Positions 21,226 through 57,286 are shown, counted from the first letter of the stretch. The stretch: 64,000 nt of DNA from Vitrella brassicaformis CCMP3155 (GCA_001179505.1 CDMY01000718.1:124001-188000), one strand, 5' to 3'. Translations and numbers: made by a program. The notes: generated by a model not told the origin, from the letters alone.

Positions 21226-21884
21226 TCATATGTCCTCAACAGACAGCACTCTGACCTGCTCTGGCCGGTAGACCACTATCTCCCCACCTGACCAATACCC
21301 ATGCACAATGGCGCCGTCATACCCCTCAGCCGAGAGCGACTCGTACGTCTCATTGGAAGAATCCGCCCGCCACACCGTCTTGGGCTTGCTCATGGTGATC
21401 TCCGCCGTAACCATGCATCCCTTCTGCTTGGCCTTGCGCTCGGTCTCGTTCTGCCGGATAGCGAAGTAGATGCCGCACCCAGCGGCCCCCGACGCACTGG
21501 GCTGCATGACGCCCGACTGCTTGATCTGCAGGCCGCGCTCGGTAGAGGTCTGATGGTAGCCAATGCAGCGGCCGGCGGTACAGATGGCTCTCAGGGTGGG
21601 GCAGTTGCTGGCGCGATGGTCGCTGTCTTTGGTGCGGCAGACTCGGCAGTAGTGCTGGGAGTGGTCCTGAAGCAATAAAAGCAGCACACGGGAGGTCGGT
21701 GTGGCGCTGTTTTGGTCATCTGTCTGCACCAATGCGTACCTCTGTGCAACCAGTAGCCTGTCAGACACACGGAAACACACACACCGACCGACCGACCGAC
21801 CGACCGACAGACAGACAGAGGAGTGAGGGAGATGCCGATACGCGCCCGTCTATCTATCAGATCTCTCACCCTGCAGCGCGGCAT
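21226..21884 (-). CDS. Zinc-module + GIG2/PARP-like ADP-ribosyltransferase ART-a (157 aa; exons 21884-21870, 21757-21740, 21666-21226)
   Basis: Spliced MPRCR|ATGCTE|DHSQHYCRVCRTKDSDHRASNCP, then GYHQTS (His), GAAGCGIYFA (Tyr), EGYDGAIV...GGEIVVYRPEQV (Glu). This H-Y-E diphtheria-toxin-like ART pattern has GIG2-like spacing. All splice sites are GT-AG and in frame. Confidence 0.85.
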
Positions 21885-22685
21885 GGTCCTCAGTCAGTCG
21901 TCAGGAACCTCCACGCGAGCATCTTTCCCCTTTAGGAATACAGAGGAGTGCAGGAATACCATCCGGTGACGTCGTCTGAAAAAACGCACACACAAGCACA
22001 TAGAGGGCGGCGTGTGGAGGGGAGTGGGGATCATGAGCTGCTGTTCAGTCTCATTTGCAACCTCAGCTCGCAGACGGGCGATCCCTTTCTTTGGCTCGAC
22101 AAAACGGGACAAACGGCAAGGCATTAGGCGTTCAGACGCAGCCTCATGAACCGCAGCATCCATGGCGTCGATTTGAGCGAGAAGCGATGAGTCATTTTGT
22201 CGTCACATCGCTTCACTCTTCCAACCAGGAGGAAGACAGGTCGTGCCATTTGTATCACTGCACGACAAGACAAGCGACAGGACGTGTGTAAGAGAAAGGA
22301 GGCGGCGGGACTCGCACCCGCATTGTGATCGGTTGGCGGATGATCTTCAGGCAGTTGTGCTACACCTCCTTGAATGCTCCGTCTTACGACTTGCCGTGTT
22401 GTGATGCAAGTGCTGTCAGTCAGCTGTCAGCGGGTGCTGTGTCCCTTTTATCGACACGCTGACTTCGGTGTGCCTGACAGTGTCTGTGTGCGTCGACCCA
22501 TGTGAAGCTGTGCAGATCCACCGAGCCATTCTCCCCTTTCTCTCCTTCCCTTCCAGTCAGTCCAGTTCTTGTCGTTGATGTCGGACTTTCCACTAGCGAA
22601 CAATCGTGATTTCATGTGAATCGTGGTCACTTTGCGTGGACATGGAAAAGCGGCGAAAAACACCGCACGGAGAGCTGGCCATCCA

Positions 22686-23315
22686 TCACATGTCCTGTAC
22701 AGATAGCACTCTGACCTGCTCTGACTTATACACGACAACCTCCACACCCGACCTAAACCCATGCACTATCACCCCGTCATACCCCTCAGCTGCCAGGGAC
22801 TCGTAAGTCACGTTGGGGACCTTTCCCCGCCACACATGCTTGGGCCTCCTAAGGGAGATCTCCGCCGTCACCATGCAGCCATGGTTGTGGGCCTTGCGCT
22901 GAGTCTCGTTTGGCCGGATGGCGAAGTAGATGCCGCACCCAGCGGCCCCCGACGCACTGGGCTGCATGACGCCCGACTGCGTGATCTGTTGGCCGCGATC
23001 GGGAGACGTCTGGTGGTAGCCGACACAGCGGCCGGAAGTGTACTTAGCTGTGAGGGTGGGGCAGTTCATGGCGCGGTGGTCGCTGTCCTTGGTGCGGCAG
23101 ACACGGCAGTAGCGCTTGGCGTGGTTCTGAAGCACCGAATGGACATGGTACACATGAGTGCGGTGTTGCGCTGCTGCTGTGGCCGTCCGTCAATCTCCAC
23201 CAATGCGTACCTCTGTGCAACCAGCAGCCTATCAGACACACACACACACACACACACACACAAGGCGTGTGTTCTGCGCTGATCTGTTCCTCTCCCTCAC
23301 CCTGCAGCGCAGCAT
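22686..23315 (-). CDS. Zinc-module + GIG2/PARP-like ADP-ribosyltransferase ART-b (157 aa; exons 23315-23301, 23228-23211, 23126-22686)
   Basis: Tandem paralog of ART-a with identical exon lengths (15/18/441 nt): MLRCR|AAGCTE|NHAKRYCRVCRTKDSDHRAMNCP...GYHQTS...GCGIYFA...EGYDGVIV...GVEVVVYKSEQV*. Confidence 0.85.
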
Positions 23316-23407
23316 TGTCCCCAGTTGGCCTTGGCTCACGCTGCTCCACATTAACGTCATCTTCCTTCCAAAGTAGGAATGCCGTCCTGTCGTCGCGACC
23401 ACCGTAC

Positions 23408-24669
23408 TCACTCCTTCATATCGAGACTGCCAAATCGCGGATGGCCGCTGAGGTCCCGCCACCACTTCATCGTCACCACACGGCCAAAGTCGCCCGAGCC
23501 GTCCCTCTTGGCGACCATCCCTTACAGCACCTCTGGATGGGACGAGTCCGTCTCCAACCACACCTGCAGACAGTGAAGGAGAGGACGATAGTGACGACAG
23601 ACAGTTGCTGCGCTACAGAGGGCCTTGTCACCTGCCGTATGCCGCCCTGGCTGTGTGGCTTGAGGTAGGCGGCCGTTCTGCTCGCCAGCGATCGGACGAA
23701 GAGCATGCCATCGGTGCCGCCGTCAAGGGCGCCGCTGTCCTCGTAATCCCTGACGCATGACAGCAACGCACAGCTGTCCACAAAGTCTCTTTAATGGCCC
23801 TCTGCTGTGGGCCTCGCACACACAGACGCAGAGAAGGCAAGTGCACTGTCGACTCGTCAACAGTGCATCTCTTCTTACCTGACAATCAGGTCATAGCGCT
23901 CGTCGTCTGGCGGCTCGAATGTCAGCATGTCGGCCTGCAGGCACCTCTACCGCTCGGCCAAGGACAAAGTGGCCGCATTCTCCGAAGCCAACCGAACATC
24001 GTGTGGGCTCAAATCAATCGCTGTGCACCTGAGAGAACGAACTCATGACACACAGAGGCTTACATGGCCATCGTCTTTCTCTCTGTGGATTGTTCACCCA
24101 CCTCGCTGTGGGCGCTTGTTTGAGCAGCGCCAGGGTGCCGGCCCCCACATCCACCAAGTGAATCACCGACCGCCGCACTTCTTCCAAAATGAGCTAAACC
24201 AGCTCCTCCGTCTCGGGCCTGCACACACAGACAGGCCGGCACACATACATAGACGCCCCCATCTCTCTGCCTGTGTGTGTCTGTGTGTACCGTGGGATGA
24301 TGTGGTGGAAGTCCCACCGCCCCACCACATACTGCACCGGCATCCCCTCCAGCCGCCTGAGGGATAACGAATCGAACAGCCGCCGCTGCCACTCGGTGAG
24401 TGGTGTTCTCTGAGTCAGAAGCCTCTTGGGCACATGGAGTGTGTCGGATGACAGCAGGTGGGCCATCAGACACCTGGCCGACACTTCAGGCTCAGACATG
24501 CCGGCAGAGCCGACACTTTCTGTGACGCTGCCGCGATGAGTGCATCTGCTGAAACACCGTCTGCATCGTCAAGGGCGGACAGCAGCCGGCGCCGTGAGCG
24601 ATTTCGTGGCGTTGGAAGAGTGAAGCGCGATGGATGGTCCAAGATCTGAGCTCGCAGCGTCGGTTTCAA
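23408..24669 (-). pseudogene. hemK: HemK/PrmC-family (release factor glutamine) methyltransferase pseudogene
   Basis: Recognisable blocks: RRLEGMPVQYVVGRWDF, RPETEELV, YDLIVS, DYEDSGALDGGTDG...YLKP, DLSGHPRF. In-frame stops at 24194-24196 (TAG), 23947-23949 (TAG) and 23522-23524 (TAA). The SAM-binding loop is shortened to DVGAGTL and no NPPY motif was found. Confidence 0.8.
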
Positions 24670-24734
24670 CGACGACCCTAATCTCCATCCAGTTGCTCGC
24701 TGTTCCTGCCCGTGTCACTGTGCAGTGAGGGACG

Positions 24735-26953
24735 ATGTCTGACACTGCTGCTGCTGCTGCGGACGGCGGCCGGCAGGCGAGGTGAATGAATGAGAGGTGT
24801 CAGGGGCCTGATTGTTTGTCAGCTCATCGTTCACTCGTCTGTGTGAGAGATAATAGGCCAAGCGAGGCCGCTCCGCCGAGCCATCTGCAGCTGCTGCAAG
24901 CGATGAGGATCAGCGACGCGCCGAAAGGGAGAGGGAACTCAGGCAGACCATCACAGACACGGTAGAGCAAATGACTCAGACAGTCTGAATGAAGCACCTG
25001 ACTCACTGTCGGCTATCTGTGTGTCTTTGCCTTTGCGCAGGATGGTCTTGTCAACTGCATCACGGCCTTTCTGCCGCTCTATCTGCTCGGCCTGCTGTCC
25101 AACACGGCCTGGGAGCACACAGCGCCCACACACACACACCTCACCATCGACAGCACCAACAGCAACGAGCGGTCGGTGTGGCAGCGGGTCCCTCTCGCTC
25201 TCGTCACCCAATGGGCCAACAAACTCACTCGGCTGACGACAATTACTCTCCGCTACCCCGTGGGTAAGGCTCTGTGGTGCATCGACGTCTTCATCACCGT
25301 GATCGAGGGCCATGTTGCCGGCCGGCGGGCTGCCAACATGAATGGCGGCACCCTGCGGACCATCACATTGCAACGGACCGTGCGATTGGCTGAGAGGGAG
25401 ATGAGTACCGTCGGCCGACCACAGCAGCTACCCCCTGACCAGATCGCGCCTTTCGTCCCGCCTCCATCGCTCGATGCGCTCACGACCGTCACCGGCGTCC
25501 TCGCCGATCATCGCGGCCTGGCTGACAGAGGGTGGCGGATGCCGTCACTCGAGACAGTGGAGCAGCAGAGGTGGGGGGCCGATGAGCTGGGCAGCTTCAT
25601 CAGCTCGTCACAGTCACTGCACCACGTGGGCGGGAGGCTGTGGGCAGTCGGCGAGCACTGGGCGGCGGTGTTCGAGCGCATGCCTGAGGCAGCTGCTGGG
25701 CAGAGAGGTCCCCTTGCAGGTCTGCAGAGCATCGGCACCATCGAGCTGGCGGCCGGCGATGCTAGCATCGACCGGGCGCGTGCAGCGGTGGACAGACTGC
25801 AGGTAACTCACCAGCAATAGATGCACGCGACAGACAGGTCTGGACGGTGCAATCTTACCATATGTGTGTGTGCTGTTGCTGTGTGCTGTAGGCGGTGCTC
25901 ACATCGCGTGGCTGCCGCCAGTCACTCACTCAGCTGACGGTGGCGATCCAACGCAGCCATATCGACAGTCGTGTCCTTCCCCTCCTGCAGTCCCTCGAGT
26001 CGCTGCACAGCTCGTGCTGCCGAGCCGACGCCAACGTCGCCTTCGAGTTCCGATGTGTCGACGGTTTCGACCTGTCGCTGTTCTACAGCGACCACTTTCC
26101 CCTCAACCCCTCCCCCCTCGTCATGATGGCCATCCAGGCGGCCGCAAGGAACGCGGGACAGCTCAACTACGACATCAGCCAGCATGATCTCACTCACCCC
26201 GTCGACAGCCCCAGCCAGGCGGCCGTCGACATCGCCAAGACACTCACATTCGACAACGTGGAGGACGTGTGGGTCCGCAATGCCTTTGGCTTCGTCCCCC
26301 CTCCCAACACCCCCTCGCCCCGCCCCGCCATCATCCAACACCTGCAGCAGCTCCCAAGAGCCCGAGAATTGATCATCGACAGTGCTCTTGGCGGTGCTGC
26401 GGGTCAGCTGCTGGCAGAGAAGATGCCGAACAAGGTGGAGTCGCTGTGGTTCTTCTCAGCTGTGAGTGCAGAGGACGGGAGGGGCGTGTTAGAGGGGCTG
26501 GGGGTGGGGAGGGAGGTGGGCAAAGTCGACGTCGGTGACTGGGAGGTCAGTCTCACTGAGGGTCCATTGGACGGCTGGCGATCGGCTAGCTTCCCGTCGA
26601 TCCAAAACATAGACATATGGGTGCCAGGTATGCAATTTCTGCAACAAAGGATACTGGCTGGCTCATCTTGTGTGTGTGCATTGCTGCCGTGTGTGTGTGT
26701 TGTTCCTTCCTCAGTGCCCGACGGCTTGGACCCCCCTGCTGCTGCCGAGCGCATCCGCGACGGCATCTCAGCCATCGCCGGTGCCGTGCGAGGCCTGCAG
26801 CATTTGACCGCGCGTGTGTTTAATGGCGTCGACGCCGTTCGCGATGCCATTGAACAGCTGCTCCCCACCGGCACGGAGCTTAGCAACAACTTCACTATCA
26901 ACGCACGGGACCTTGATGACATCATTTACCTGACTGCAACGCGTCGCTTCTAG
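24735..26953 (+). CDS. Member of the expanded Vitrella-type F-box/LRR-like hypothetical family
   Basis: Spliced ...ERERELRQTITDT|DGLVNCITAFLPL...QWANKLTRLTTITLRYP...LADRGWRMPSLETV...LTSRGCRQSLTQL...FDLSLFYSDHFP...LTATRRF*. I recognise these motifs as typical of a large Vitrella family; function unknown. Confidence 0.75.
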
Positions 26954-27349
26954 AGGGTGAGACCGTCCATGGCTCCTGGCGCCTCTCTCTCTGTCTCTCC
27001 CGTCCCTCATTCATAGCATCCCCCCCTGCCACACCTGACCGACTGATTGATTTGTGGCCGGCAGCAGTGAAGGCATCCATCCATCCATTTGTGCACTCAG
27101 TGGTGAGTCCGTCGTCCGTCGAGTGAGGGCCGGCAGAAGGCAAGGACTAGAGGAGACGCCACGTGGCTGGGGTCCTGTATTTCTGGGTGTTTGCATGTCG
27201 GTCGACTCAAAGGTGAATGTGTATCATGATGTCTAGCTTTTAAACCGCTCAACGAACACATCACCAGTGCATTGGACAAAGAATTTATTCAAACACCGAC
27301 AATGTACTGAGTCCATCACTTAACAAACAAACACTCATTCCCGCCCTGG

Positions 27350-28211
27350 TCACTCCTCACTCGCACGACCCACCCCCGCCCCCCCTCTGTTGACATGTGC
27401 CCAGAAGTCCGCTGCCATATTGAGGGCGAAGAAGTCAGCACACGAGCCACTCGACCAGTAGGGCGACTCGCCAATGGTGTCCGGCCTACTCTGCGCCCTC
27501 GACAGTGTCGCCTTTCTCTGTCGGCCATGACACAATCAGATGTGCGACATGAGGTCACAGACAACCAGCGCGTCAACGGCCTGCACCCGCTGCCAGATGA
27601 TTCCCTGCCGTGATGTGCCCGAGGGCTGTGCTGTACTGTGCTGTGCTGTGTTGAGCGGAGGTGCTGCAGATGAGACTGCCTTATGGCTGTAGGTTTTGTT
27701 TTCGGGCCAACATGTGGTGCTGAGTGTGGCCCGAATCATGCGTGTGATTGTGCTGAGTCGAGGCGCGTTTTCGACAGGATTGCACGCAGTATGTGATGTC
27801 GAGATTGCACGTCAGGTCAGTAATGGCGGACAAAATCTCCCTTCCCTCATTCTGGAGGGACAAGATAGTTTCGTGGACAGTTTCTTTCTCGAGGTCGGAT
27901 AGAGAAATAGATCGTAGTTGATTCAAAATGGTAATGGATGGTAAGGGAGTTTCTGTGCGCGCACGGCGTCTTCAGCTGTTTTCCGATGTTACGTAGAAAA
28001 ATGTCTCTTCATGTCTCTTCATGTGGACCGCATGTATAAGTCTGTTTCTTGGACGGATGTGTCCATGGATATCACAGAATCGTCTCTCCAGCTCCATGAA
28101 TGGCCAGAAGATCCCAGCAGCATGACACTCTTGTGTACGTGCGTACGTACGTACGCAGAACGGCAGGGAGAGGGAGAGAAAAAAGGATTGTATCGGCAGC
28201 ACCACCACCAT
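27350..28211 (-). CDS. Possible multi-exon hypothetical protein (weak)
   Basis: Several short protein-like segments on the minus strand (FMELERRFCDIHGHIRPRNRLIH; LSDLEKETVHETILSLQNEG; ESPYWSSGSCADFFALNMAADFW). I could not build a full spliced model. Confidence 0.3.
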
Positions 28212-29089
28212 AAAAACACAGACAGATGTCAGGCAATCCAGCGAGGCGTCCCGCGTGAGGAGCGATAGGCGACACGCATGGAGTCATGGACGCCTACCTA
28301 CAAGTGATCTGAAGACAAACTATCAGGCACTCAGGGCCGCAGAGACGTCAAAGAAAAGGCCAGAAGCCAAAGGCCAGCCACACACAAAGACAGACAGAGA
28401 GTGGTGCGATCATCGATGACCTAGACACGCTGATGGCGCTCTCACGTTGATGGCCCCAGAGCACAATGCATCGCCAGCCACCACCGTGCAGACAACGCAA
28501 TGCAATCAGCCAGCAGCCACTCATTGCGAGTGTGTGTGTGTGTGTGTGTGTGAGGGGGGGGGCCGCCGCCCCTCTCATCCACCGCGCCACACCTAGAGGG
28601 CACATACGCATTCACCTATTGTAACCGACTTGCGAGTGGAGGAGAGTGGAAGGAAGGGCAACACAGACAAACAGACAGACAGAGTTGCATGGCAGAGGGC
28701 CCCAGTCAGACGTCACCCACTACAGCACACCCACCTCTCCAATGACACATAGAGGGATACGTACGCGCACACATACGACAAACAAAGACAGAACGAACAC
28801 TCACACCGCCCCCCTGCAGACGCCACCCAACTCCTGTCTCTCTCTCTCTCTCGAGCGGCGCGCACTCCCCCTTCCAAGACAGACAGACAGACAGACAGGC
28901 GAGAGATGAGGTGTGTGCAGAAGAGCCCGAGCCCGATAAAACTCCTCGCCCATTCCCCCTCTCCACACACGCACACACAGAGAGGTTGGGATTTGTGTGT
29001 TGGGATATCAGCAAGACGATCCACGAAGGCAGGCAGGCAGGCAGCGCATTGCTATCGATCCTTGCCGTGTATGGCCACATGGATGCGCT

Positions 29090-32000
29090 GCGGATGAGAA
29101 TAAAGGCAGCGCCACATATGACACGTATCACCATGCACAGCACACACACAGGCAGCTGTGGACACGCACACGCGACAATGCAGCGAGTGGATCGTATGTA
29201 TCATGTATGTCTCGGAAAGAGGAGCCAGCAAGCAGCAGAAAGGAAACGCCCTCATCCCCCGGTGGGCCCATTCCCGGTGGGGTATGCAACCGCCCCACAT
29301 CGCACGCAGCAAATCTCTCGCTCGACCAAACAACCAGCAGCGCCATGGACCCAGAGGATGTCCCGCCATAAACGACGATCCGCCTGGCGAGGAGGCGATG
29401 CCCGTGAGCGCATCACCGCCTCGCTGCCTTTCGAAAAAGACCAAATATGTGTGTAATGTGTGTACGCAGATGCGCAGAATTAGCCAGACATCACAAATGC
29501 CGTATGCACACCTCATGTCGAGTGTGTCGACAGGGGGCTACGACTCAGAAATTATCCCCCTAACCATGACAACGGTACGCTACGTGTTCCTTCTCTCCCC
29601 CACTCCCCGCCACTCACCGCCGCCCACCGCCCCACGCACACAAAAATCAGCCGTACGTACTTTCGTGTCCCTTACGCACACATCTACATGCGCCTCGTCG
29701 TCCCTTAGGCAATACTGCACAATCACAAGACAAACCACACAACACAACACAACACAACCTGCCTGCCCGACAGCGACACGACACCACACGAGCCGACCGA
29801 CCGATGACGCATATTTGTTTAGGCACACACGTCCACACGTGTGAATCCTTGTGTGGTAAATCCTCCCTCCCCCAACCCCTCCATCCCTCTCTCCGTCGCC
29901 ACCACGCGCACACAACGGCACCATTCCCTCTCTCGTGTGCCGCCACACACCCACACACACACCCACGTAGCCCACACACATTCGCCCACAGTCACTGTTC
30001 TGCATACGGATCAGACTCGCTCAGAGAGGCAGCTTGAAAGTGTCTGGCCATGCATGCACTCCATCGAGCGGACACCAACATGCACCAGTCACGGGGACAA
30101 CTGTGTCCGGCAGCAGTCACCGAATCATGCAGTGTGTTTGTAGGTGTACGTACGTATGTATCCATGTATGTGAAGCACATGCCCTGCCCCCTTTGAAAGA
30201 CACCCACACACATGGACAGGCAAATACTGACACACGCAGAGCCCCATTGAGACGTCATACGTGTCAAGACCGACGAAATAAGCGTTGATGGGACAGTTGG
30301 CTTGTCTATCTCTCCTTCTCTCCCCGTGCAGCTACTGTCCGATACAAAAATGCATGTGCAACGCACGGATGTGTGTGTGTGTGTGTGTGGGGGGGGGGGG
30401 GGNNNNNNNNNNNNNNNNNNNNNNNNNNNNNNNNNNNNNNNNNNNNNNNNNNNNNNNNNNNNNNNNNNNNNNNNNNNNNNNNNNNNNNNNNNNNNNNNNN
30501 NNNNNNNNNNNNNNNNNNNNNNNNNNNNNNNNNNNNNNNNNNNNNNNNNNNNNNNNNNNNNNNNNNNNNNNNNNNNNNNNNNNNNNNNNNNNNNNNNNNN
30601 NNNNNNNNNNNNNNNNNNNNNNNNNNNNNNNNNNNNNNNNNNNNNNNNNNNNNNNNNNNNNNNNNNNNNNNNNNNNNNNNNNNNNNNNNNNNNNNNNNNN
30701 NNGGGGGGGGGGGGGGGGGCACCGACAAGACACACACAGGACACACGCACAACCCCCGCATGTACGTAACAAGATTCCACTGCAGGGCCACACTGCAACT
30801 GGATGAATAAAGACCAGATAATGGAAGCTCACCGCAGCCCCTGTCCCTCACGCAGCACGTCACGAATGTACGTTCGTACTGCGTTGTTCGGACAGACAGA
30901 CAGACAGACAGGCAGACCGACAGAGGAAACTAAGGCATTGCAGGCGGGTCTGTTACACAAGAAGGTAGTGATACGCACGAGCACTACACAGAAGAAGAGA
31001 GCGCCCCATCAAGACGTCATATGTGTAAAGACCGACGACATATGCACCTCTGCTGATTGTGATTGGACAGTTGGTTGGCTCGTCTATCTCTCTCTCTCCC
31101 CTCCATCCAGCCACCATCAGAGATGAACGAATGAATGAACGCATGTGAGCACCGACGAGACACACATATGCCCACCCAAGACACCCCCCCGGCATGGCCG
31201 CACTGCCGCTGGATGAAGAAAAACCAGATCATGGAAGCACCGCAGCAACCGTTCATCACGCAGCACCCCACAAATGTACCTTCTTACTGAGCTGATCAGA
31301 CAGATAGACAGAGGACAGACAGACAGACAGACGAAAGAAAGACAGATATACAGACAGGCCGACAGGCAGACAATGAGGTTGGATTACACACCTGCCAGCA
31401 TACATACCATCCCTGTAAGTCAACAAATATGTGCGCCCTCTGACGGACAACATGTACTAGACAGAACACACACGCGACCAACAGCCGACCTCTGAAAGGC
31501 ACCCGACGGCAATGGCTGCTCACACGGTGTATGTATGATGTGTGAGGCTCCTGCGTGGCGTCTCACTCACACGAGCCGTCACGCAGCCAGGCCCACCCCC
31601 ACTTCCGCTCTCCACACACCACACCACACACACTCACACTCCACATCAACGCATAGGAATACCACAGAGAGCTAGTCGACACGGATTTTGTAGCACCTAA
31701 TCTACTTACTCACGTCACAGCAGCCTGGCCTGATACCACACGAGCGACCAAGGGCTCACACTCTTCGCGAATGAGAGTCCTTGGGCGGCCGTGTGTCGTG
31801 GGAAAAAACACACCACCAACACGCTCCGTGAAGAAAAACCAGCCAGTCATGACTACACGTATTACACATCCATACACGCATATGCTCAACGCATGCAGGT
31901 GAGACAAAGAGAACTCACTTCCCGCTGCTCGCCATGGTGCGCTCTCAATTGCTCGTGAGTATCTGCATACGCACACGCCCACACACACAGGCAAGGCGGC

Positions 32001-32240
32001 CTCCGAACAGGAGAGGTGCATTTAGATGTGTTACAGGAGAGGTCGCCCATTCCCCTCACAGAGAGCAATGGACACGCACATGCAGCAACGCAGCGTATGG
32101 ATCATGTCTCTCCATCATGTGCTAGGGAAGCAGACAGCATTACCAAGCTCAGCTTCCCTCAGACAAAAATCGGCCGTCCGTTTATCCATCCATCCTCTAC
32201 GTGAGTGTCGTCCCTTACGCAATGGTACAAAACACAGACA
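29090..32240. repeat. Degenerate non-coding internal repeat region
   Basis: Recurring blocks: GACACGCACA..GCAGCG..TGGATC (about 29160, 32070); CAAAAATC.GCCGT...GTCCCTTA.GCAAT (about 29641, 32163); ACAGTTGG..GTCTATCTCTC (about 30293, 31068); GGATGAA.AAA.ACCAGAT.ATGGAAGC (about 30801, 31211). Confidence 0.55.
30403..30701. other. Assembly gap (299 N) flanked by poly-G runs
   Basis: Directly visible. Confidence 1.
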
Positions 32241-45878: not shown

Positions 45879-46952
45879 ATGACCCCATCAACGGTCCTCC
45901 CTGCTTTTCTTGTGTTTGTTCTGCTCCCCGCCGAACCAGCCTTGTCCGCAACGGAAGCAAACTTTTGCGCCGACTTCGACACCACTTGCGGCGTGGGAAC
46001 GTGAGGGGGCCGCTGGATGTGTACATATGCTGCAGCGATCTTTTCTCTCATGTGCGTGTCGGCCCTCAGGTGGTCTGATGACATTGCTGGCGGCAACGAT
46101 TGCCCCACAACTCTGAGTGACTTCTGGGCTGGACAAAGCAGTACGAGACACGCACTGACTTGTTCTTCAGCAATTAGTGCTTTATCCTCTCTCTCAGATG
46201 AGCACCGCGGCAAGTATAAGAACTGCCTTGTTCATTGGCTGACGGAAGCTGAGACAGAGACCAACTCCGACATCAAAGCAGCATATTGTTTGTATGCAAA
46301 TGGAGCGCCACCGTGCAAGTAGGCGAACTTTCGAGTGCAGCTTCCAATCGAAACCATGTCTGCGCTGCTGTGCTGCAGTGAGAGGTATTGCGTCGAGTGG
46401 TCTGAGATATGCGGCACTGGATCAGGTATGACAGGAAGGACACGTGAAGATGGACCATCTTGTGTGACTCTTGTCAGGTCCTTCCTGCAACGCATGGTTC
46501 TCTGCTGACCATTATGACGACCTGAGAGCCACACAACCAGCAGACAGGCCTCACCCAGGTACACACGAGGCGGATTCAGATGACACAGGAGTGTCTGTCT
46601 GATATGTATCTGCCCTCACAGGAGAACCAACATATTGGTGCAACTACCGGCCCATCGGTACGCTGAAAACATGCGAACAGGCGGTGTCTTTAATGCCGGC
46701 GTGATTGATGCAGGCGGCAACGATCCCCCAGTTCTCCGCCGACTGTTGCGCCCACTGTCTTCTTCTACAGAATTGGATGCAATTGACAAGGAATTGCATA
46801 CTATCGATCCATCCTTGCCTCCACTGCACACGCGGGGCGACCTCTTGATCAATGTGACGGCTGTGGCTGTGTGGGCAGATGGACTTGTAGAGCCTCTGAA
46901 AATGAGAGAGCAACGCAAAGATGACGACTTGAGTGGAGGGACGAACGAATAG
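45879..46952 (+). CDS. Putative secreted Cys-containing hypothetical protein
   Basis: MTPSTVLPAFLVFVLLPAEPALSA resembles a signal peptide. Short Cys-bearing exons follow (NFCADFDTTCG; GNDCPTT; KNCLVHW...AAYCLY). Last exon ends LSGGTNE* at 46952. Confidence 0.55.
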
Positions 46953-47205
46953 ATGATTATATCTGTTTGCATGGGCGAGACTGCGCGTTGTGAGCGCCTT
47001 TATGTTGCTTTATGTTGCTTTGAAATCGTCACGGCATTGCGAATTGCTTGTCCGATGTATAAGATCGATACCTCCATACACAAAACCACTGAGACTGTCG
47101 ACTCAAAGGCACAAGCTCATCGAAGACCACTGCCTTAAAAACACACGAGGCCCCCGCCAAGCCCCTACACCGTCCCTGTGTACTCGCATGGATGGCCTGC
47201 CTGTC

Positions 47206-48825
47206 TCACGCATGGCTGATAGGTATCTCTGCCCCCGTCGCCATGTCACGGATCTTCCTCAGCCTGACCTGCGCCCAGTTGAAGACGATGTACTCATCTC
47301 CAGTGGGCATGCCCGTCAGATGCACCGAGTCGTATCCTTGTGCTTTGAGGCTCGTGTGGGTGTACTGGCCGGCCCCCAAGAGGGCGGAAATCTTGAGGCT
47401 GTTGCCCAGGTACACTCGCGCCTCGATCATGCAGCCTGGACTGTGAGCCTTGCCCATGGTGGCCTGTTCGGACGCCGCACTGACGAGACACATCGACACA
47501 GGCGCAGATGAGACGGAGACAGCTGATGGTGACTGTATGGTTTCCGTGGTTTCGTCTGCTTACAAGTAGATGCCGCCCCCAACGATGCCCGTCGATCCCC
47601 GCATCATCTTCCGGCCCGAGGCGATGGCCTGAGCGGAGGCCGCGGATGTCTGATGGTAGAGTGTGATGCCCTTGGGGCACTCGGTGGCCCAGTGGTCGCT
47701 GTCCTTGTCTCCACACAGACGGCAGTAGTGCTTGTGCGCTTTCTTGCAGCCCTTGACACGACATTGCACCGTGCAGTTCCTGGTCAGGTGGTCGTTGATC
47801 TTGCCGCACCGTCGGCACTTGTGTTGGGAGTGGTCGATGCGGCAGCCTCGGACGCCGCACGACTGGCGACGGGGCGACGGGGAGCGGCGGCGGTGGCGAG
47901 GCGAATCACCGCCCTGCTGCTGGTGCTGCTGCCCCGATATGCAGAGGTTGTTGAAGAGCATGGCTGCGGCCAGCACACGCGGGTCACACACATGGGCGGC
48001 CTGAACGGGACATTCAAATCCACGGTGAGAGGCGGAGGAAGTGCCTGCAGTGGTGGTGCGTACCGGAGCTGCATTGGTGTTCTGGCTGGTCTGCTGATTG
48101 GTGTTCTGATCGGCCGTCTGGTCGGTGTTGTCCTGCTGGCCAGCTCCCGTGGCGGGCGCAGGGGCTGGCGGAGGCGGCTGCATCATTGACGTCAGCAGCT
48201 GTGTCGCAAGCAGCTGGAACAACACACACCATCGGCCAGCCTTCGCATCCACTGAGTGCATGCGCATGTGCGTACCTGCATTATCAGGGGCTGCATCATC
48301 GGGTTGGCGCCACCCGGGGAGCCAGACGAGCAGCCAGACGACCGACGAGACCTGCGGGACGATGTAGCCTGACAGCCACACACAACAGACAGCAGCACCA
48401 GCCATCAATGCATTGAATGCGGCCTTCCCATCCCCCCGTACCGTGCTATCGTCCGATTCGTTGCCGTCATCATCACTTCCGCCCGAGTCAGCGGCCGATC
48501 GCGCCCGACTCGACGAGGCCTTCCGCAGCTTGGGGCATGCAGACGAATAGTGATCAGAGTCCTGCACACAGACAAACACACAGAGAGGCGGTCGCGTCGC
48601 ATCATCGGCCTTGGTTCATGTCGGCACAGGACCGCGTCGCCGCAGGTTTTGCAGTAGTGCTTGCCCGTCTTCTGGCAGTTGGGGTGAGTGCAGGAAGGGA
48701 TCCTGCAGCCGCCGGAGCGACTCGGAGCCTGACAGACAGAGAAGGACGCAGATCAAGCAGCGAAGAAGATGTGTCCAGGATGCGCGAGCTGTCCGTCATG
48801 AGCCAATCTTCCACACCTGCGACAT
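47206..48825 (-). CDS. Triple zinc-module + GIG2/PARP-like ADP-ribosyltransferase ART-c
   Basis: Module 1: CRIPSCTHPNCQKTGKHYCKTCGDA|DSDHYSSACP. Low-complexity S/Q/P linker. Module 2: CGVRGCRIDHSQHKCRRCGKINDHLTRNC. Module 3: CRVKGCKKAHKHYCRLCGDKDSDHWATECP. ART domain: LYHQTS...GIVGGGIY|FA...QGYDSVHL...GDEYIVFNWAQV. The start (MSQ|AP.. at 48825) is a hand prediction. Confidence 0.85.
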
Positions 48826-49155
48826 TCGAGGATGCCGCCGCCTGCCAGACACCTCCAAAACGTCCGAAAAAAGGAAAGAGCTTTCCCTTGTGCGAGCTAG
48901 TCTCGTAAATCCTGTTCCTGCTGTATTCCTTTCCTGCCACTCAAGGAATACTTTCCTTCACTTGACGTCGAGGCTCGTTTGTGCGCTTCCTTTGTCGCCC
49001 TGGCGTCAAAGCTCGTTTCTGTGCTTTTTTTCCCATCTCGCCTCTTTCCCTTTGCCGGCCAAGGCAACAAGGACTACCACAACACGCCCCCTTCCTTCGT
49101 GCGTGCAAAGGACCGGGTTGAGCTTCTGGTAAGACTGGGCAACGGAGGCAGCAAC

Positions 49156-52100
49156 ATGACCTGCCGCGTCCCTGGCTGCAAGGAGGCTCACAAGGCCCAC
49201 TATTGCAAATGGTGCAAGAACCAGAACTCCAACCACTTCGCGCGTGACTGCTGGCATGGGCCCGGTGGACAGAGCGCGTCGACATACTCGGTACGCAGGC
49301 GACAGGATAGACAGACAGCGCCCTCAATGCCGTTCCCTCTTTCCTGCATGTGTTGTCTGCAGGGTGGCTCACCCGACAAGAGCCCACAGCGCAGCACATC
49401 ACGCGCCAGGGAGCGCAGCCGTTCAGGGCAGCCGAAGGGCCGCGTTGGTTGCCGCGTTCCAGGGTGCACTTTCCCCAACTGCCTCAAGACGGGACACCAC
49501 CATTGCAAGAATTGTGGCGACAAGGTAGCTACCAAGGACGCCCCATGGTGCTGATTCATCTGTTCCTTTGCCTGTGTTTGGCCTGGCCGCAGGATTCCGA
49601 TCACTTCTCGTCGGCATGCCCCAAGCTGCAGAAGCCCGGCGGGCAATACACGACCACCTCGCGCTTGGTGAGTGGCCATAATGCTAGAGGGCCTCGTTGC
49701 AGGACTGCATTTGGTGTGTCTGACGATGCTGTTTCGTTTCAGGTGCATTCGTCGCACCTCCTGTCGTCGCTCTATAACGGTTCACCTCACGCCGTCAAGA
49801 CAATCCTCGCCAACTATGCGACGGATTATGGGCGCGCAAAGGAGCCCAAGGACGTCACCGGTCTGCTGAGCACGCTGCAGTCGGCCATGGGCGGCCGAGG
49901 GGGCAGCTTCCATGGCATGGAGAGGGTGCTGACCTCTACCTTCATCAACGAGACGCTGCCCGTCCTGTGCGGCATCCTCTCCAAGGGCGACCTCAGCTTC
50001 CCCCTACAGCCGCCATCCAGCCACTCACACAGCGGCACGGAGGCACACATGACTGCCCGCCAGTGCTTTGCCCTCATCGGTGCGGGCTTCCTCTGTCTGC
50101 ACCAGCCCGGCGACGGCAGTCTCAACTTCGACCGCCTGTTCGACAACAGCACACCCTCTGGCAAGGCCAAGCTGCAGTGCTTCATCCACTACCTGGACAC
50201 CATGGCGCGGGCGATCAAGGAGGGCAACACCGCCGAGACGGAGCGTGTGGTCGTGTTCCAAGCCCTCAGCAGCCCCGAGGCGGGTATCCACGACTGGGCG
50301 ACATCGACCGCCCCACTGGTGGATGTGCGCTTCGTGCAAGGCACCCAAGCGTCCATCTTCGACGCGCCGGCCATCCGAGGCGACTTCGCCAATGCCCACA
50401 TCGCCGGCGGAACACTGGGAAAGGGTACGCACACAAAGACGAGAGACAGACAGGTTGATGTGCATCGATTTACATTTGTCTTTGCCGTCTCCGTCTCTCT
50501 CTCTCTCTCTCTGTGTGTGTGTCTGTGTGTCTGTGCCTGTTTGTGTGTGTGTGTGTCAGGTGCGGTGCAGGAGGAGATCTTGTTCTCAATTGAGCCGGAG
50601 TGCCTTCTCGCCCGCCACCTCTTCCCCAGAGCCATGCAGCCCACTGAGGCCTTCATGATCGTCGGCTCCAAGACGTTCAGCAAAACATCTGGCTACGGCC
50701 GCGAGACCCTCCGCTTCAGCGGCCCTGCCCACGACACGGCGGCCACGAGGCGCGTCGATGGCCATCCGGTTCTGAACAAGTACATCGTGGCCTTTGATGC
50801 GGTCAACTTCGGCAAGCACGGGAGTGATCAGCAGTACGACAAGACGCATGTGGTGCGAGATCTCAAGAAGGCACACACGGCATTCCATTGCAATGGCCTC
50901 ACGATCGTCGGAGGACTGCCCTTCGCGACGGGTGAGTGAGGCACACACAGATGGCCATCGTGTCTTGTCTGCACATCTGCGTCGGTTCGTGTGTCTGCGT
51001 GTGTCTGTCCAGGCAATTGGGGCTGTGGCGTGTTTGGTGGCGACCCCCAGTGGAAGCTTCTCATCCAGTGGTGCGCTGCGAGTCTCGCCGGCCGCCCGCT
51101 GCACTACTACCCGCGAGACGAGCGCAGCCTTATGGGCGCCGAGCGCTTCATCCACAGCCTGAAGGCCGCTGGGTGCGACACTGTGGGCGGGCTGGTCCAG
51201 CTGATGTGTGACAGGCGCACACAGAGGGCCATCGCGGGGCGGAATCGAATGTCGGCATTCGAGGCCATCAAAGCGATCGTCACGGACCGGAGCAGACCAC
51301 CCCCACCACCCGTGGTAAGCTGCCCCTCCATACTGTCTGCATCAATCTCATTGGGTTTCTGTGCGTTTGTGTGCCAGCCTCGCAGCTCACTGCCTGCATC
51401 CCACATGCAGCACTACTCCCCTTCCCCCCCCATGCAGCACTACTCGCCCCAGCTCGCATTGCCGGACCGGGCGGCAGCGCCACCTACGACAGGCCGAGAG
51501 GAAAGCCAAGGCGACACGGTGAGCCGTCTGCCAAACCTGAGATCCTGTGGTCATGCCTGTCTGTCTGTCCCCAGGCAGCCCTCGCTGCGTCTCCCATGTT
51601 GTCGGCCGTCACTGCAGACGAAAAGCATGCAAAAGATGACAATCCAAGAGAGGTCCGTCGAGACATGACACACACTTCTATGTGACCGATTGGTGTGTGT
51701 TGTGCGATGCTCTGGCTGCCAGGTTGGCTACGCTCCTCTGGTCGACACGACCGACAACGAGTCGTCGAGCATGGGTGCCTCGGATAGCGACGACAAAATG
51801 GACGTCGACGCGAGTGACGCGACCAACGCGGGCGCCACGGTGGAGGAGACCACACCCCTCCTCTCCATGCAAGACACGACCAGCCACACGTAAGGAGCAT
51901 GCACAGAGCCCATAGACGTGTGGTCAAGGCGTAGGTCTGGCTTCTCTGCGTGTCGTATGTTGTCAGAATTCATTACGTGTTCGAGTACGTGCCGAGGATG
52001 TATACCTTCCCCTCTGAGGTGGTACTCAAAGGCTCCTTCGACGGCTGGCTTGGCCATCACCCGATGTCTTGGTCGCCCAAGCACAGGTGCTTCGTCTACG

Positions 52101-52279
52101 GCATGCCGCTGCCCCCGGGCAGGTACATGTACAAGTTCATCGTGGATGACAGGTGGGTGTGTTCCAGCACGCAGCCAACAGGCGAAGATGGAGCTGGCAA
52201 TACCAACAATGTCGTCACCATCTCACTTGACCGCCAATGTCTGACCTGCGGGGTGGTACATGGGGGGAGGGGGTGCTAG
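49156..52279 (+). CDS. PARG: Poly(ADP-ribose) glycohydrolase PARG-1: 2 zinc modules + PARG catalytic domain + C-terminal CBM48/AMPK-beta-like glucan-binding domain
   Basis: MTCRVPGCKEAHKAHYCKWCKNQNSNHFARDCW; CRVPGCTFPNCLKTGHHHCKNCGDK|DSDHFSSACP. PARG signatures DFANAHIAGGTLGK|GAVQEEILF, SGYG, RDLKKA, AT|GNWGCGVFGGD. Final exon from 51967: SEVVLKGSFDGW...LPPGRYMYKFIVDDRW...NTNNVV. Confidence 0.92.
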
Positions 52280-52825
52280 GCGGGATGGCCTGTGTGCGGA
52301 TCGTAGCATGGGATCAGTTTGGATTCGTCGAATTGGGCTGGGAGACGTGCTGGCTGGGGGGTGCAGTGTGAAATCAGTGATGGCTCCGTAGGTGCGTGAG
52401 GATGGGCGGGTTCTTGTAACTAGATGGGCGAGCAGAGAGCGGGAGAAGAGGACGAACGGCATCAAATGTGACATGGCTGCTGTGCGTATCGTAGTGTGGG
52501 ATCAGTCGTAGAGTCGTAGATAGATGAGGGCGGATTCTCACAGGCAGTCGGTGCCCTCTGCGTTTTTTCTACGAGACACTTTGGTTAAATCCATGTTCGT
52601 GTGTGTCCCATGCATGGGCTGTGTCGTGTGATTTTGAATTGAAGTACGCGTAGTTTGACGCACTCTGAGTCTGTGCTTTTTGTAAGGCCCTTTGACTTGT
52701 GCATGTGAGGCTTTTCCATTAAGAGTGACGGCGAGCAGCGGACTAGACATCGAAAGTGAGCGCAACACAAAAGCGGCCGCATCAAGAATATATACATCAA
52801 TTCCTCCACCCGAACAGAGACACGC

Positions 52826-52979
52826 AGCATCAATCAAGTCACACGACCGTCAGCACCTCCACGTCACTGGCACTAAAATCTCGATGGCCACCGAACACTG
52901 CACACGCAGCAGGCCCCCTCGCCCCTTGATAGCCATCAGGCACATGACTCCTCTTCATGAAGTGACGACAGTAGCGCAC
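52826..52979 (-). pseudogene. 3' remnant of the TLDc gene (duplicate of 57668-57821)
   Basis: Near-identical DNA to the end of the TLDc CDS (VPDGYQGARGPAACAVFGGHRDFSASDVEVLTVV). The rest of the domain is absent. Confidence 0.8.
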
Positions 52980-53139
52980 TCCTGTTGATAATGGACCAGT
53001 GTATAGGTGTTTATGGCGTGTATACAGACTTGACATAAGACACTGATGTCTTTCCCTGACCGGTCCAAAGGCACAGAAACCTATCTTCTTGACTTCTCTG
53101 CACGCCTCATTGTCCACTTGCCTCCTTGCACCAAAACTT

Positions 53140-54141
53140 CTAGACGAAAAAGCTCATAAACACGCGCCCGATGAAGCCCAGAAGCTTGATGCAGCCAGGG
53201 AGCACGACCTCTGGGATGAGCTGCACAAACACAATCCCGACAACGAAGTCGAGAATCAAGATCTCGATGAATAAGTCGAAGATCAACATCTCGATGATCA
53301 CCTCGAGAATCACGCGCTCGACAAAGAACTCGAGCAGCACGCGCTGGACAAAGAATTTGCCGAGCTGCACGACGCCCTCCGTGACGGGGCGCGGTAGTCG
53401 TGTAGTGCCAACAAAGAAGATGAGACTCCTACAACACACACACAACACACACACACACACACACAAACATGACAGGCAGGATTTGACACTTGTTTGGTTG
53501 GCTGTCTGCTGCATTGGTCACTTGAATGCCGCGACTCCTCTCGGGGCCAATTCGCCTGCCTTTCCATGGAGAAATCGGTATAAGAGGCGAATCCTCTTGA
53601 TTAGGCGGGTTTCGCCGCGGTCGTCCTTGCAATCTCGATCATAAGCCTGACGCTTCTTGCTGTCTTTCAGTAGCTACACACCACGCACACAATCAATGCA
53701 CACCGCCACACACGCATGGCGTTGCTCACTTCGTATGCGGTGCGAAGGTCAATGAATTTCTCGTGCGCTCTTGGGTCACCGGGGTTCTTGTCGGGATGCA
53801 CTTGCTTGGACTTCTCGAAATACCCCTGCCATGATGACACAGACAGATAGACAGAAGATAGACCACACACCAAGAGGACTGACTGACTGACTGACCTGCT
53901 TCAGCTCTGCATCCGTGGCGTCCCTCGGCACCCCAAGAATGCGATAGCAGGAACAGGCGTTTCGACAGCCTCCTTGACCCAATGCAGGCGCCACTAGCAG
54001 GAGCGATAGCACAGAGAACAGACTCCGAAGAGAGCTGCATGCACACACATTGGTGCCTCGCGCGAAGCCTCAGGCGCCTGGGCAAGCGAGTCATACGTAC
54101 CTCGGACACTTGGACAAAAACGGCGTTGTATCACACGTCAT
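53140..54141 (-). CDS. J-domain (DnaJ/Hsp40) protein with N-terminal signal/anchor and hydrophobic C-terminus
   Basis: Spliced MTCDTTPFLSKCPS|SLRSLFSVLSLLLVAPALG...CYRILGVPRDATDAELKQ|GYFEKSKQVHPDKNPGDPRAHEKFIDLRTAYE|LLKDSKKRQAYD. HPD motif present. Confidence 0.88.
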
Positions 54142-54847
54142 TCGTTCGCTGCGCTGACAAACACGCAATCCGCTCTCCGATGCAGTACAGGTGTTTGTGT
54201 TGCAGTGCTACTGCAGTGTTGCAGTGATGCACACACAAGCAGGGGAAGAGAGAAATCGTCTCCTGGCGGGGAGCCCCTTTTGGGCCCGTGTATCGTGCAT
54301 ACCTGCCACATTGACGATACCGCTGCTTCCTGAACGCCGAGGAATGGGGGGTATCCAGAAAAGAACTGCAAGCTCGCAGATCTGAAGGGGGGGGGATGAG
54401 GGAGAGAAACCGCTGATGCTGAAGGGAGAGAACGAACGATGTCAAAACGTTGTGTTGCTGCGCCTTGTTTGCACCCTTGTTTGCAGACCCTTGGATCCTC
54501 AAAGATCTGCGCTGTGTTCGGCTCTTCAGAGGTCAAAGGCAGAGTATCGCTTCGATTGTGTCCAAGACGACACAAAGGCCAGCAGGCAACGAGAAGCAGT
54601 GACACATTCGCCGGGGATCCGATGCTCTCGAGGATAGGACAAGCCGACAGGATGCCACAGGAATACGGATCACAGGAATACATTGACAGGTATATGCCTG
54701 TTGCCTGTTCTGGTGCATTTCCTCAGCTGCTGAGCCGTCTTGGTCCGCTCGCCATCTCCCGCGCTTCATTCTTTGGTCCGCGAAGCGAAGAGAGCGAGAA
54801 GAAGCACAGAGGACCATACTTCCTGATCTGCCGTGCAAAACACAGCC

Positions 54848-57286
54848 ATGGTGAGAGCGACCCTACCAGCGTCCAGCGATCGGATTGCACCCCTCCACTC
54901 ATGTCTTGTCCCATCGTCCGTGTGTGCAGTGGTGGCTTGGCAAGACTTGCCGCGTCCCTGGCTGCACGGAGAAGCACAAGGCGCACTTCTGCAAATGGTG
55001 CAAGAACCAGAACTCCAACCACTTCGCGCGTGACTGCTGGTATGGGCCCGGTGGGAAAATGGCAGCGAACAACAAGCACTCGGTAAGCGAACGCACTCGC
55101 AGACCTACACCGCATTACTATGTGAGTCATGCCGCTCTACGTGTTGCCTCCCATGTACGCTGTAGGCTTTGCCTCGCCAGTCGCCGGCCCATCACGGCTT
55201 ACCTGCCACCGTCAAGGCCATCCTCGCTCACCTCGCGACGGATCACGGCCGCGCCAAAGAGCCCAAGGACGTCATTCGTCTGCTGGGCTGGCTGCAGTCG
55301 GCCATGGGCGGCCAGGGGATCTCATCGACCAGCTTCCGTGGCGTGGAGAAGGTACTGACCTCCACCTTTATCAACGAGACGCTGCCCGTCCTGTGCGACG
55401 TCCTGTCCAAGAGCGACCTCAGCTTCCCCCTGCAGCCGCCATCCAGCCACTCACACAGCGGCACGGAGGCACACATGACTGCCCGCGAGTGCTTCGTCCT
55501 CATCGGTGCGGGATTCCTCTGTCTGCACAAGCACGGCCACTCGGGCAGCCTCAACTTCGACCGCCCCTTCGACAACCACACACCGTCTGGCAAGGCCAAG
55601 CTGCAGTGCTTCATCCACTACCTGGACACCATGGCGCGGGCAATCAAGGAGGGCAACACCGCCGAGACAGAGCGTATGGTCATCTTCCGAGCCCTGCATA
55701 GCCCTGCGGCGGGGCTTCAGGAGTGGGCGAGGTCGACAACCCCTCTGATGGACGTGCACTTGATGAATGGGAAGGATGCGTCCATCTTCGACTCGAAGGG
55801 CATCAGGGGCGACCTTGCCAATGCCCACATCGGTGGCGGGACGCTGGGAAATGGTACGCAGACACAAACAGGCACAGACACGCACTGATCCATGTGGACC
55901 TGTCTGTGCCTTGCTGCGTCTGTGTGAGTATTTCAGGTGCGGTGCAGGAAGAGATTTTGTTTTCCATCGAGCCGGAGTGCCTCGTCGCCCGCCACCTCTT
56001 CCCCAGAGCCATGCAGCCCACAGAGGCCTTCATGATCGTCGGCTCCAAGACGTTCAGCCGCACATCGGGATACGGCCGCGAGACCCTGCGCTTCGCCGGC
56101 TCGGCACACGACACCGCCACCATGAAACATACCAACGGCCATTCCGTCCTGGGCAAGACCGTTGTGGCCTTTGATGCGGTCAACTTCGGCAAGCACGGGG
56201 GCGATCAGCAGTACGACGAGAGGTGCGTGCTGCGGGAGCTTAACAAGGCACACACGGCATTCCATTGCAATGGCCTCACGATCGTCGGAGGACTGCCCTT
56301 CGCGACGGGTGAGTGAGGCACACACAGAATGGCCATCGCTTCTTGTCTGCACACCTGCGTCGATTCGTGTGTCTGCGTGTGTGTCTGTCCAGGCAATTGG
56401 GGCTGCGGTGTGTTTGGTGGCGATCCCCAGTGGAAGTTTCTTATCCAGTGGTGCGCTGCCAGTCGGGCGGGTCGACGGCTGCACTACTACCCAAGAGACG
56501 AGAAGAGCCTCGTGGGCTCCAAGAACTTCATGCACGACCTGAAGAACGCTGGGTGCTCCACGGTGGGCCATTTGGTGCAGCTGATGTGCGATGGGCGCAC
56601 ACGTGGGGCGATCGGGCGTCGCGTGTCGGCCTTCGATGCCATCAGAGGAGCCCTCGCACAACAAACCAGACCAGCCTCTCGACAGATGGTACACCTACCA
56701 CCCTGCACACCTGTCGCCGTGTATCACCGTGGATGCTTTGGTGTGCGTGTGTGTGTGTGTCGCAGTCCCACAGTCTACCCCCCCGCAGGCAGCAGCCACG
56801 CAAACGCACACTGAGCAACTCGCCGCCAGCGCCACCCACGAGACGACACCACGGTGGGATAATCGACACCAACAAAGCGGAAGCCAAGGAAAGGGAGACG
56901 ACACTGCTCGCGTCTGCACAGAAGAGTGGCGACAGCAAGTAAGCACCCACAGAGACGCACACACCGCAGAGAGGGGAGCGAACGGATCCTGGCCGTGTCT
57001 GTGTGCCTATGGTGGTGGTGTCAGGATCGATCACATTTTCCAGTACGTACCGGTGAAGCGCACTCGTCCCTCTGAGGTGTTGCTGGCCGGATCCTTCGAC
57101 GGCTGGCACGGCCGCTACCCGATGTTCTGGTCTGCCGAGCACAACTCCTTCGTGCTGCCCATGCCGCTGCCTGCCGGCAGACACATGTACAAGTTCATCG
57201 TCGATGGCGTCTGGACGTGTGCGGGCCGGCAGCCAAGTGCTCGAGATTCGTCTAACAATCTCAACAATGTGGTGAACGTCGGATAG
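54848..57286 (+). CDS. PARG: Poly(ADP-ribose) glycohydrolase PARG-2: 1 zinc module + PARG catalytic domain + C-terminal CBM48-like domain
   Basis: M|WWLGKTCRVPGCTEKHKAHFCKWCKNQNSNHFARDCW; DLANAHIGGGTLGN|GAVQEEILF (GGG-x6-QEE); SGYG; RELNKA; GNWGCGVFGGD. Last exon from 57025: SEVLLAGSFDGW...LPAGRHMYKFIVDGVW...NLNNVVNVG*. Confidence 0.92.

Follow-up and report, generated by a model that had tools for sequence, protein, structure and literature searches.

In bacteria, genes that add and remove ADP-ribose recurrently adjoin one another: in DarT/DarG and other writer-eraser operons the gene for an ADP-ribosyl writer lies beside that for a macro-fold eraser, and DarTG itself is an operon that joins a DarT-family ADP-ribosyltransferase (ART) to a DarG macrodomain antitoxin. 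Eukaryotic ADP-ribosylation writers and erasers are, to our knowledge, normally unlinked and carry different targeting domains. The closest described eukaryotic families are the PARP catalytic family (PF00644; tankyrase and PARP2/3/4), canonical poly(ADP-ribose) glycohydrolase (PARG) and the Gig2 proteins of fish, the last being interferon-induced ARTs that are distantly related to PARPs and confined to non-amniote vertebrates (bioRxiv 10.1101/693333). Here we analysed 64,000 nucleotides of the chromerid alga Vitrella brassicaformis CCMP3155 (contig C718:124001-188000; hereafter the window, with positions counted from its first letter), which code for three small PARP-fold ARTs and two canonical PARGs. 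The window is part of a Vitrella lineage-specific expansion of these two opposing enzyme families, and its functional unit is an ART3-type writer and a PARG bearing the same module, transcribed outward from a shared region. Each component belongs to a known kind (PARP-like ART, PARG, knuckle-like zinc module and the glucan-binding domain CBM48); the novelty lies in how these kinds vary here, with one module common to both enzymes, head-to-head pairing that recurs in a eukaryote, and a PARG fused to CBM48.

The three writer genes lie on the minus strand. ART1 (21226-21884) encodes a zinc module and a minimal PARP-like ART domain in 157 amino acids, and ART2 (22686-23315) is its tandem paralogue, with 73% amino-acid identity in exon 3 and a ratio of non-synonymous to synonymous substitution rates (dN/dS) of 0.34. 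ART3 (47206-48825; P0061 = CEM31362.1, 392 amino acids, 7 exons) combines three zinc modules with a low-complexity linker and an ART domain that an intron interrupts. The two erasers are on the plus strand. PARG-1 (49156-52279; P0160 = CEM31363.1, 808 amino acids, 10 exons) comprises a type A module, a type B module, the PARG helical and macro domains and a C-terminal CBM48, and PARG-2 (54930-57286, the start being approximate, with the initiator Met on an exon upstream of 54930; P0162 = CEM31365.1, 648 amino acids, 6 exons) comprises one type A module, the PARG domains and CBM48. The original prediction, made from the sequence alone, had proposed three ARTs with an intact H-Y-E triad and two PARGs with a QEE motif, all opened by one Cys/His module, and each of these observations held up. 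A six-frame motif scan placed YHQT, GIYF(A) and E-[IVY]-[VI]-V-[YF] at three minus-strand sites, and the triad is intact in ART1, ART2 and ART3, with GIYF of ART3 appearing after splicing.

The module with which all five genes start is about 30 amino acids long and has the form C-x4-C-x3-H-x2-H-x-C-x2-C-x6-H-x4-C (type A); in a second form (type B), an inserted Cys replaces the first His. Alignment of 25 copies revealed seven invariant ligands (C3, C8, H15, C17, C20, H27 and C32), the eighth being, in type A, a His that precedes H15 by three residues and, in type B, the inserted Cys. Vitrella ART and PARG proteins hold one to three copies. Regular expressions and alignments located type A modules in PARG-1 (49162-49251, plus), PARG-2 (54948-55037, plus), ART3 (47773-47859 and 47677-47763, minus) and, split by introns, ART1 (21601-21884, minus) and ART2 (23061-23315, minus). 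Type B modules are present in PARG-1 (49450-49640, plus), with a 68-nt intron after CGD-K, and in ART3 (48520-48710, minus), whose 71-nt intron interrupts the matching codon position.

Only in its second half, which reads C-x2-C-x6-H-x4-C and then a tail that is Pro or basic, does the module weakly resemble the CCHC knuckle of retroviruses and Lin28. Unlike that knuckle, the module has a loop that is two residues longer and an obligatory N-terminal C-x4-C-x3-[H/C]-x2-H that adds four ligands; it thus departs from the PF00098 spacing C-x2-C-x4-H-x4-C, and it gave no match to that profile. UniProt labels ART3 'CCHC-type domain-containing'. Pfam holds no model of the module, and its zinc-finger models, zf-CCHC included, gave no module match at E < 1. 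In a profile search of the PDB, the second half weakly matched the nucleocapsid knuckle NCp10 of Moloney murine leukaemia virus (MoMuLV; E 0.03). The module modelled alone reached a pLDDT of 81, and Foldseek of that model against the PDB returned nothing significant, the best, non-significant rows being Lin28 knuckles. The module is probably an extended CCHC-type knuckle that would hold two zinc ions; that it binds nucleic acid is our guess from the resemblance to knuckles.

We searched the whole assembly (72.7 Mb, 1064 contigs) with a module profile and obtained 29 matches from 32 candidates. Twenty-five of the 29 fall within ART or PARG genes already located by domain searches. One further match, on C515, is a diverged ART with H and E motifs that was found only via its module, two (C718:18.8-19.6k) lie in a shortened copy of the N-terminal part of ART3, and one, on C291, is an orphan with no ART or PARG domain detected within 5 kb. 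Counted by locus, 27 of the 29 are at ART or PARG genes, the diverged ART on C515 among them. The module is therefore nearly restricted to the ART and PARG families in the Vitrella genome and, within the sensitivity available, is not spread over unrelated proteins. The orphan (C291:103.2k; L013:5150-5266) is a type A module with a PARG-like CWYRP tail. The truncated paralogue (C718:18.8-19.7k; L014:4799-5667) has two modules and the same low-complexity linker as ART3. It ends at a stop codon, ahead of any ART domain, and has probably decayed.

Outside Vitrella, the module was found on two short environmental contigs only (P0010 and P0069, from ENA metagenome contigs), in both cases before the same ART domain. 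These environmental genes are intronless; P0069 has two module copies and P0010 one, and the host of P0010 may be non-eukaryotic, given a neighbour with a Rieske TAT-signal domain. A bacterial genome scan with P0010 returned no relative, word-index searches with the module returned only Vitrella proteins or the query itself, and an ESM Atlas feature search gave no usable match, with structural neighbours at TM ~0.2; all three negatives are weak, given the limits of the tools.

Genome-wide, we located at least 25 ART loci and 12 PARG loci. The PARGs form two groups, seven at 62-84% identity to PARG-1 and five at 30-40%. Module copies were detected at six of the seven PARGs of the first group, which also carry CBM48 in six of seven cases, and an ART3-type gene lies within ~1 kb of five of the seven. 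Four of these five pairs are head-to-head (this window, C718:53-56k, C718:238-241k and C238:97-100k) and one is tandem (C718:229-232k). The five diverged PARGs have neither a module nor a nearby ART, and one WGR locus is also present in the genome, which suggests that ordinary poly(ADP-ribose) (PAR) machinery is encoded elsewhere. By chance, ~0.03 such neighbours would be expected (arithmetic from ~25 ART and 12 PARG loci in 72.7 Mb). Because the pairs arose by duplication rather than as independent events, the meaningful point is their retention at dS 0.3-0.8, and over that range the paralogue copies have dN/dS of 0.23-0.44, indicative of purifying selection.

In the window, the start codons of ART3 and PARG-1 are separated by 330 bp (48826-49155), a region that holds the 5' ends of both genes and is presumably a bidirectional promoter. 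Across the head-to-head pairs the shared region is ~0.3-0.9 kb long and contains blocks conserved in all four, with the window copy nearly identical to that of the C718:239k pair. The first coding exon of ART3 is a 9-nt micro-exon at 48825-48817 (ATGTCGCAG, followed by GT), which is also kept in all four head-to-head pairs.

The remaining two writers are of another kind. ART1 and ART2, arranged in tandem, represent a 157-amino-acid ART subtype different from that of ART3, and at C801 (L021:1908-3227) and C238 (L019:3568-4875) this subtype is head-to-head with a diverged P0004-type ART, not with a PARG. The P0004-like ART (35% identity) has a type B-like module, so that these are writer-writer pairs. 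ART1 and ART2 lie 24 kb from ART3 and PARG-1, with ~12 further annotated genes between ART2 and ART3 (an estimate from accession numbering). The interval also contains an assembly gap of N in simple-repeat-rich DNA (30403-30702), 7.1 kb from ART2 and 16.5 kb from ART3. It interrupts none of the five genes; because it lies between them, the linkage of ART1 and ART2 to ART3 and the PARGs, and with it the 36-kb span, rests on a scaffold join. The claim of a single 36-kb system has to be narrowed: the real unit in the window is the head-to-head ART3/PARG-1 pair together with the duplicate PARG-2, which lies 2.6 kb downstream of PARG-1 with one annotated gene between them (accession numbering). ART1 (CEM31347.1), ART3, PARG-1 and PARG-2 are all on one contig of 287,382 bp, C718, which is a region of enrichment (7 ART and 6 PARG loci over 190 kb), not one cassette.

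What kind of writer these genes encode became clear from profiles and structure. Single ART sequences from the window gave only a sub-threshold Pfam match to ART-PolyVal, below the PARP cut-off. When a profile of ten Vitrella paralogues was run against the PDB, it matched the catalytic domain of PARP3 (E 1e-7), aligning the H and Y, and its alignment to PARP4 reaches the catalytic Glu. The AlphaFold2 model of ART1 has a pLDDT of 92.4, and in a Foldseek search of the PDB each of its top 50 matches was a PARP catalytic domain (probability 1.00). In a set of 1.84 billion representative proteins, the ten-paralogue profile detected 2095 relatives at E <= 1e-3, of which 993 were at E <= 1e-10. Among the best 150 homologues, 91 have a PF00644 match, and the alignment of the 150 never varies at H, T or Y and hardly at E. 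We conclude from this homology that the Vitrella ARTs are PARP-fold H-Y-E enzymes, for which NAD+-dependent transfer is predicted. They share the fold and the NAD+-binding triad of the PARP family and differ from it in having an ART domain of only ~120 amino acids, without helical regulatory, WGR, ankyrin or SAM domains, fused to a novel zinc module.

The same searches bear on the name 'GIG2-like', which had been given to the three ARTs. An Astyanax Gig2e cluster (NCBI 'GCRV-induced gene 2e'; P0013/P0154) was match 13 of the Vitrella profile, at E 4.6e-31, and by BLASTP it aligns to a Vitrella ART at E 8e-6, identity across the H and Y motifs being 33-35%. Protist proteins are nearest to the Vitrella ARTs, a named example coming from the dinoflagellate Effrenium. 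The Vitrella ARTs are thus in the same broad clade as many minimal protist ARTs and the antiviral Gig2 of fish. Like Gig2, they are small PARP-related ARTs that lack the usual PARP accessory domains and form multigene families; unlike them, Gig2 carries its ART domain in tandem, differs in the C-terminal half, and has neither a zinc module nor a reported PARG partner. 'Gig2-like' therefore seems a fair label for a minimal PARP-related ART clade, in the sense of homology by profile. As a chromerid alga, Vitrella falls outside the interferon-induced, non-amniote vertebrate clade of Gig2 proper.

Other ART-domain relatives among the best 150 carry ankyrin, MOV10-like helicase or WWE domains, two have PBZ (PAR-binding) zinc fingers and one has a starch-binding CBM_20, so that a glucan-binding theme also occurs on the writer side elsewhere.

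The erasers are closer to their described counterparts. PARG_cat_N and PARG_cat_C are above the Pfam cut-off in both PARG-1 and PARG-2 (E 1e-28 to 1e-29), and the signature I(A/G)GGTLG(K/N)GAVQEE, which contains G-G-x-x-G-x-G-A-V-QEE, and the loop GNWGCGVFGGD are intact in the five copies retrieved (P0160-P0164), PARG-1 reading AGG where GGG is expected. Both enzymes are canonical and, judged by these motifs, look catalytically intact. The macro fold, GGG-x-QEE and GNWGCG.FGGD are as in canonical eukaryotic PARG, unlike which the Vitrella clade of seven copies has N-terminal zinc modules, a C-terminal CBM48 and a genomic ART partner. The closest non-Vitrella match of this clade has 27% identity.

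The CBM48, a glucan-binding domain of the AMPK-beta type (Pfam PF16561, AMPK1_CBM), is encoded at 51989-52225 (plus) in PARG-1, with E 1e-19, and at 57047-57253 (plus) in PARG-2, with E 4.5e-19. One MMETSP transcript encodes a protein identical to PARG-2, which shows that a single mRNA spans module, PARG and CBM48. Seven of the nine best CBM48 matches in the genome sit on module-bearing PARG genes, and our literature search found no paper on a PARG with CBM48. One PARG of the module-bearing clade (C718:96.9-98.0k; L017:4940-5994) has two tandem CBM48 domains, and tblastn found no zinc module upstream of it.

Short coding exons of 15, 18 and 9 nt (21740-21884, 23211-23315 and 48817-48825) carry zinc ligands or the start codon. 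ART1 is composed of exons 21884-21870, 21757-21740 and 21666-21226, and ART2 of exons 23315-23301, 23228-23211 and 23126-22686. Upstream of the main exon, the two genes align well only from a short block that corresponds to a 15-nt exon (in ART1, ATG-CCG-CGC-TGC-AGG, followed by GTGAG); the second micro-exon of ART1, of 18 nt (GCT-ACT-GGT-TGC-ACA-GAG, followed by GTACGC), precedes the main exon. Both micro-exons and their GT/AG sites are kept between ART1 and ART2, and in both genes the zinc module is complete only once the 15-nt and 18-nt exons are spliced in, the spliced N-terminus of ART1 being MPRCRATGCTEDHSQHYCRVC. The resulting three-exon ART1 model (157 amino acids) equals the MMETSP transcript product P0151 letter for letter. 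The deposited model, CEM31347.1 (153 amino acids), lacks the first Cys of the module because the first micro-exon was missed; P0151 has that Cys.

The module also appears to have moved between writer and eraser. ART3 and PARG-1 contain an inverted repeat with 60-nt arms that are 80% complementary (48517-48576 and 49578-49637); in both genes the repeat takes in the DSDH..ACPKL exon together with the end of the intron next to it. An intron after CGD-x is found in the ART-side type B modules of at least three pairs, whereas among PARG-side type B modules the ART-type intron is found in PARG-1 only. This pattern is consistent with a local inverted duplication that carried the module exon of the ART into PARG-1. 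PARG paralogues are 70-84% identical in most segments and 95-96% identical in one (window 51147-51290 against L018:4039-4179 and L023:5652-5819), and gene conversion among them is likely, going by this mosaic.

Taking these results together, we consider it reasonably probable that in each pair the two enzymes are co-regulated and co-targeted and make ADP-ribosylation reversible, possibly at nucleic acid or close to it. A shared promoter region would co-express writer and eraser, and the common module would then take ART and PARG to the same substrate or site, which, by the knuckle-like half, may be single-stranded nucleic acid or a protein bound to it. There the ART would add ADP-ribose from NAD+ and the PARG would trim or remove it, so that the mark would be transient or spatially limited. 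CBM48 would tie the PARG to storage glucan or to a CBM48-binding partner. Such a circuit could serve defence or stress responses. Opposing enzymes that carry one targeting module and repeatedly share one promoter region offer a genomic hint as to the writer that a given eraser counteracts and the target on which it does so, and a 157-amino-acid ART, a 30-amino-acid module and a PARG make a compact system for ADP-ribosylation specificity. The Gig2-like minimal ART clade, antiviral in fish, is extended here to a free-living relative of apicomplexan parasites, and the PARG-CBM48 fusion would link ADP-ribose turnover to storage glucan, a link that we found in no paper. Nor did our literature search find a paper on Vitrella ADP-ribosylation genes or on a PARP expansion in dinoflagellates.

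Several points weigh against reversible, co-targeted ADP-ribosylation by these pairs. PARG is best known to cut ribose-ribose bonds in polymers, and these minimal ARTs may not make polymers. Transcription is documented for ART1 and PARG-2; ART3 and PARG-1, the partners of the head-to-head pair, have no exact match among MMETSP transcript products, and the sequencing runs found were genomic contigs that span the introns and carry no splice or expression signal, the apparent joints being cross-mapping between paralogues. Not every module-bearing ART has an eraser partner, as ART1 and ART2 adjoin no PARG. Nucleic-acid binding is drawn from a weak likeness (NCp10 at E 0.03, Lin28 non-significant). 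Support is poor in the trees built for the ARTs and PARGs of the five pairs (bootstraps of 28-56 at most PARG nodes), which are not clearly congruent, the copies being mosaic, and which do not demonstrate the co-evolution of writer and eraser originally proposed. The pairs may also persist merely as co-duplicated genes that have not yet separated.

The last point leads to the strongest alternative, in which the arrangement is a neutral by-product of segmental duplication and exon shuffling: one ancestral pair of neighbouring ART and PARG genes would have been duplicated repeatedly within a single chromosome region, local inverted duplication and gene conversion would have spread the module from neighbour to neighbour, the enzymes would have unrelated targets and their adjacency would have no regulatory meaning. 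The concentration of most copies on C718, the mosaic identity of the PARGs (mostly 70-84%, with one segment at 95-96%), the inverted repeat over the module exon and the poor resolution of the trees are all as this account would have it. However, dS of 0.3-0.8 with dN/dS of ~0.3 indicates long retention under constraint, head-to-head orientation is kept in four of five pairs with blocks of the shared region conserved in all four, and the module is confined to two opposing enzyme families despite the other genes around them. We therefore regard a purely neutral origin as rather unlikely.

A toxin-antitoxin-like or selfish addiction pair, multiplying as a selfish or defence cassette, is a more doubtful explanation still. 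By analogy with DarT/DarG, the ART would be toxic, perhaps by acting on nucleic acid, and the PARG would be its antidote. Writer and eraser genes do adjoin, the family is multi-copy and fast-evolving, its fish relatives (Gig2) are interferon-induced antiviral ARTs (bioRxiv 10.1101/693333) and PARG has been reported as an efficient hydrolase of ADP-ribosylated RNA (PMC11920425). Yet the ART is PARP-like rather than DarT-like, ART1, ART2 and many other ART paralogues have no adjoining eraser, and no transposon or repeat boundaries were seen around the pairs, although no systematic search was made. The parallel with DarTG drawn in the original prediction thus survives as an analogy, in the adjacency of writer and eraser. 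The Vitrella genes themselves are eukaryotic, spliced and divergently transcribed, their eraser is a PARG and not a DarG macrodomain, and both partners have a targeting module in common, of which DarTG has none.

We hold a eukaryotic conflict system to be similarly improbable. Here the module would put the PARP-like writer and the PARG on the same single-stranded nucleic acid, be it viral or transposon RNA or DNA or the cell's own RNA ends, which would be reversibly ADP-ribosylated, while CBM48 would hold the eraser on starch or glucan granules, so that the place or time at which the mark persists would depend on the storage or energy state of the cell. Least probable of all is an amplified but ordinary PAR metabolism of DNA damage, with the module sensing DNA breaks like the zinc fingers of PARP1 on housekeeping repair enzymes: an H-Y-E triad with Glu beside a canonical PARG is a hallmark of poly(ADP-ribose) turnover and the modules are predicted to bind zinc, as the break-sensing fingers of PARP1 do, but no WGR, BRCT, helical regulatory or PARP-type zinc-finger domain is present in the ARTs, the separate WGR locus and the five diverged, module-less PARGs could serve housekeeping, a CBM48 on a repair enzyme would be unexplained and ~25 copies are atypical of repair PARPs.

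Open reading frames listed across the gap at 30403-30702 are artefacts of translating N. Twenty long open reading frames from the ART2-ART3 interval and its flanks had no Pfam match at E < 1e-3. Similar open reading frames (…RCVG(D/N)AK.LV…FG.(Y/F)…), likewise with no Pfam match at E < 1e-3, lie just 3' of module-bearing genes at two places on C718, namely window 57675-58843 (minus) and L014:7909-8811 (plus).

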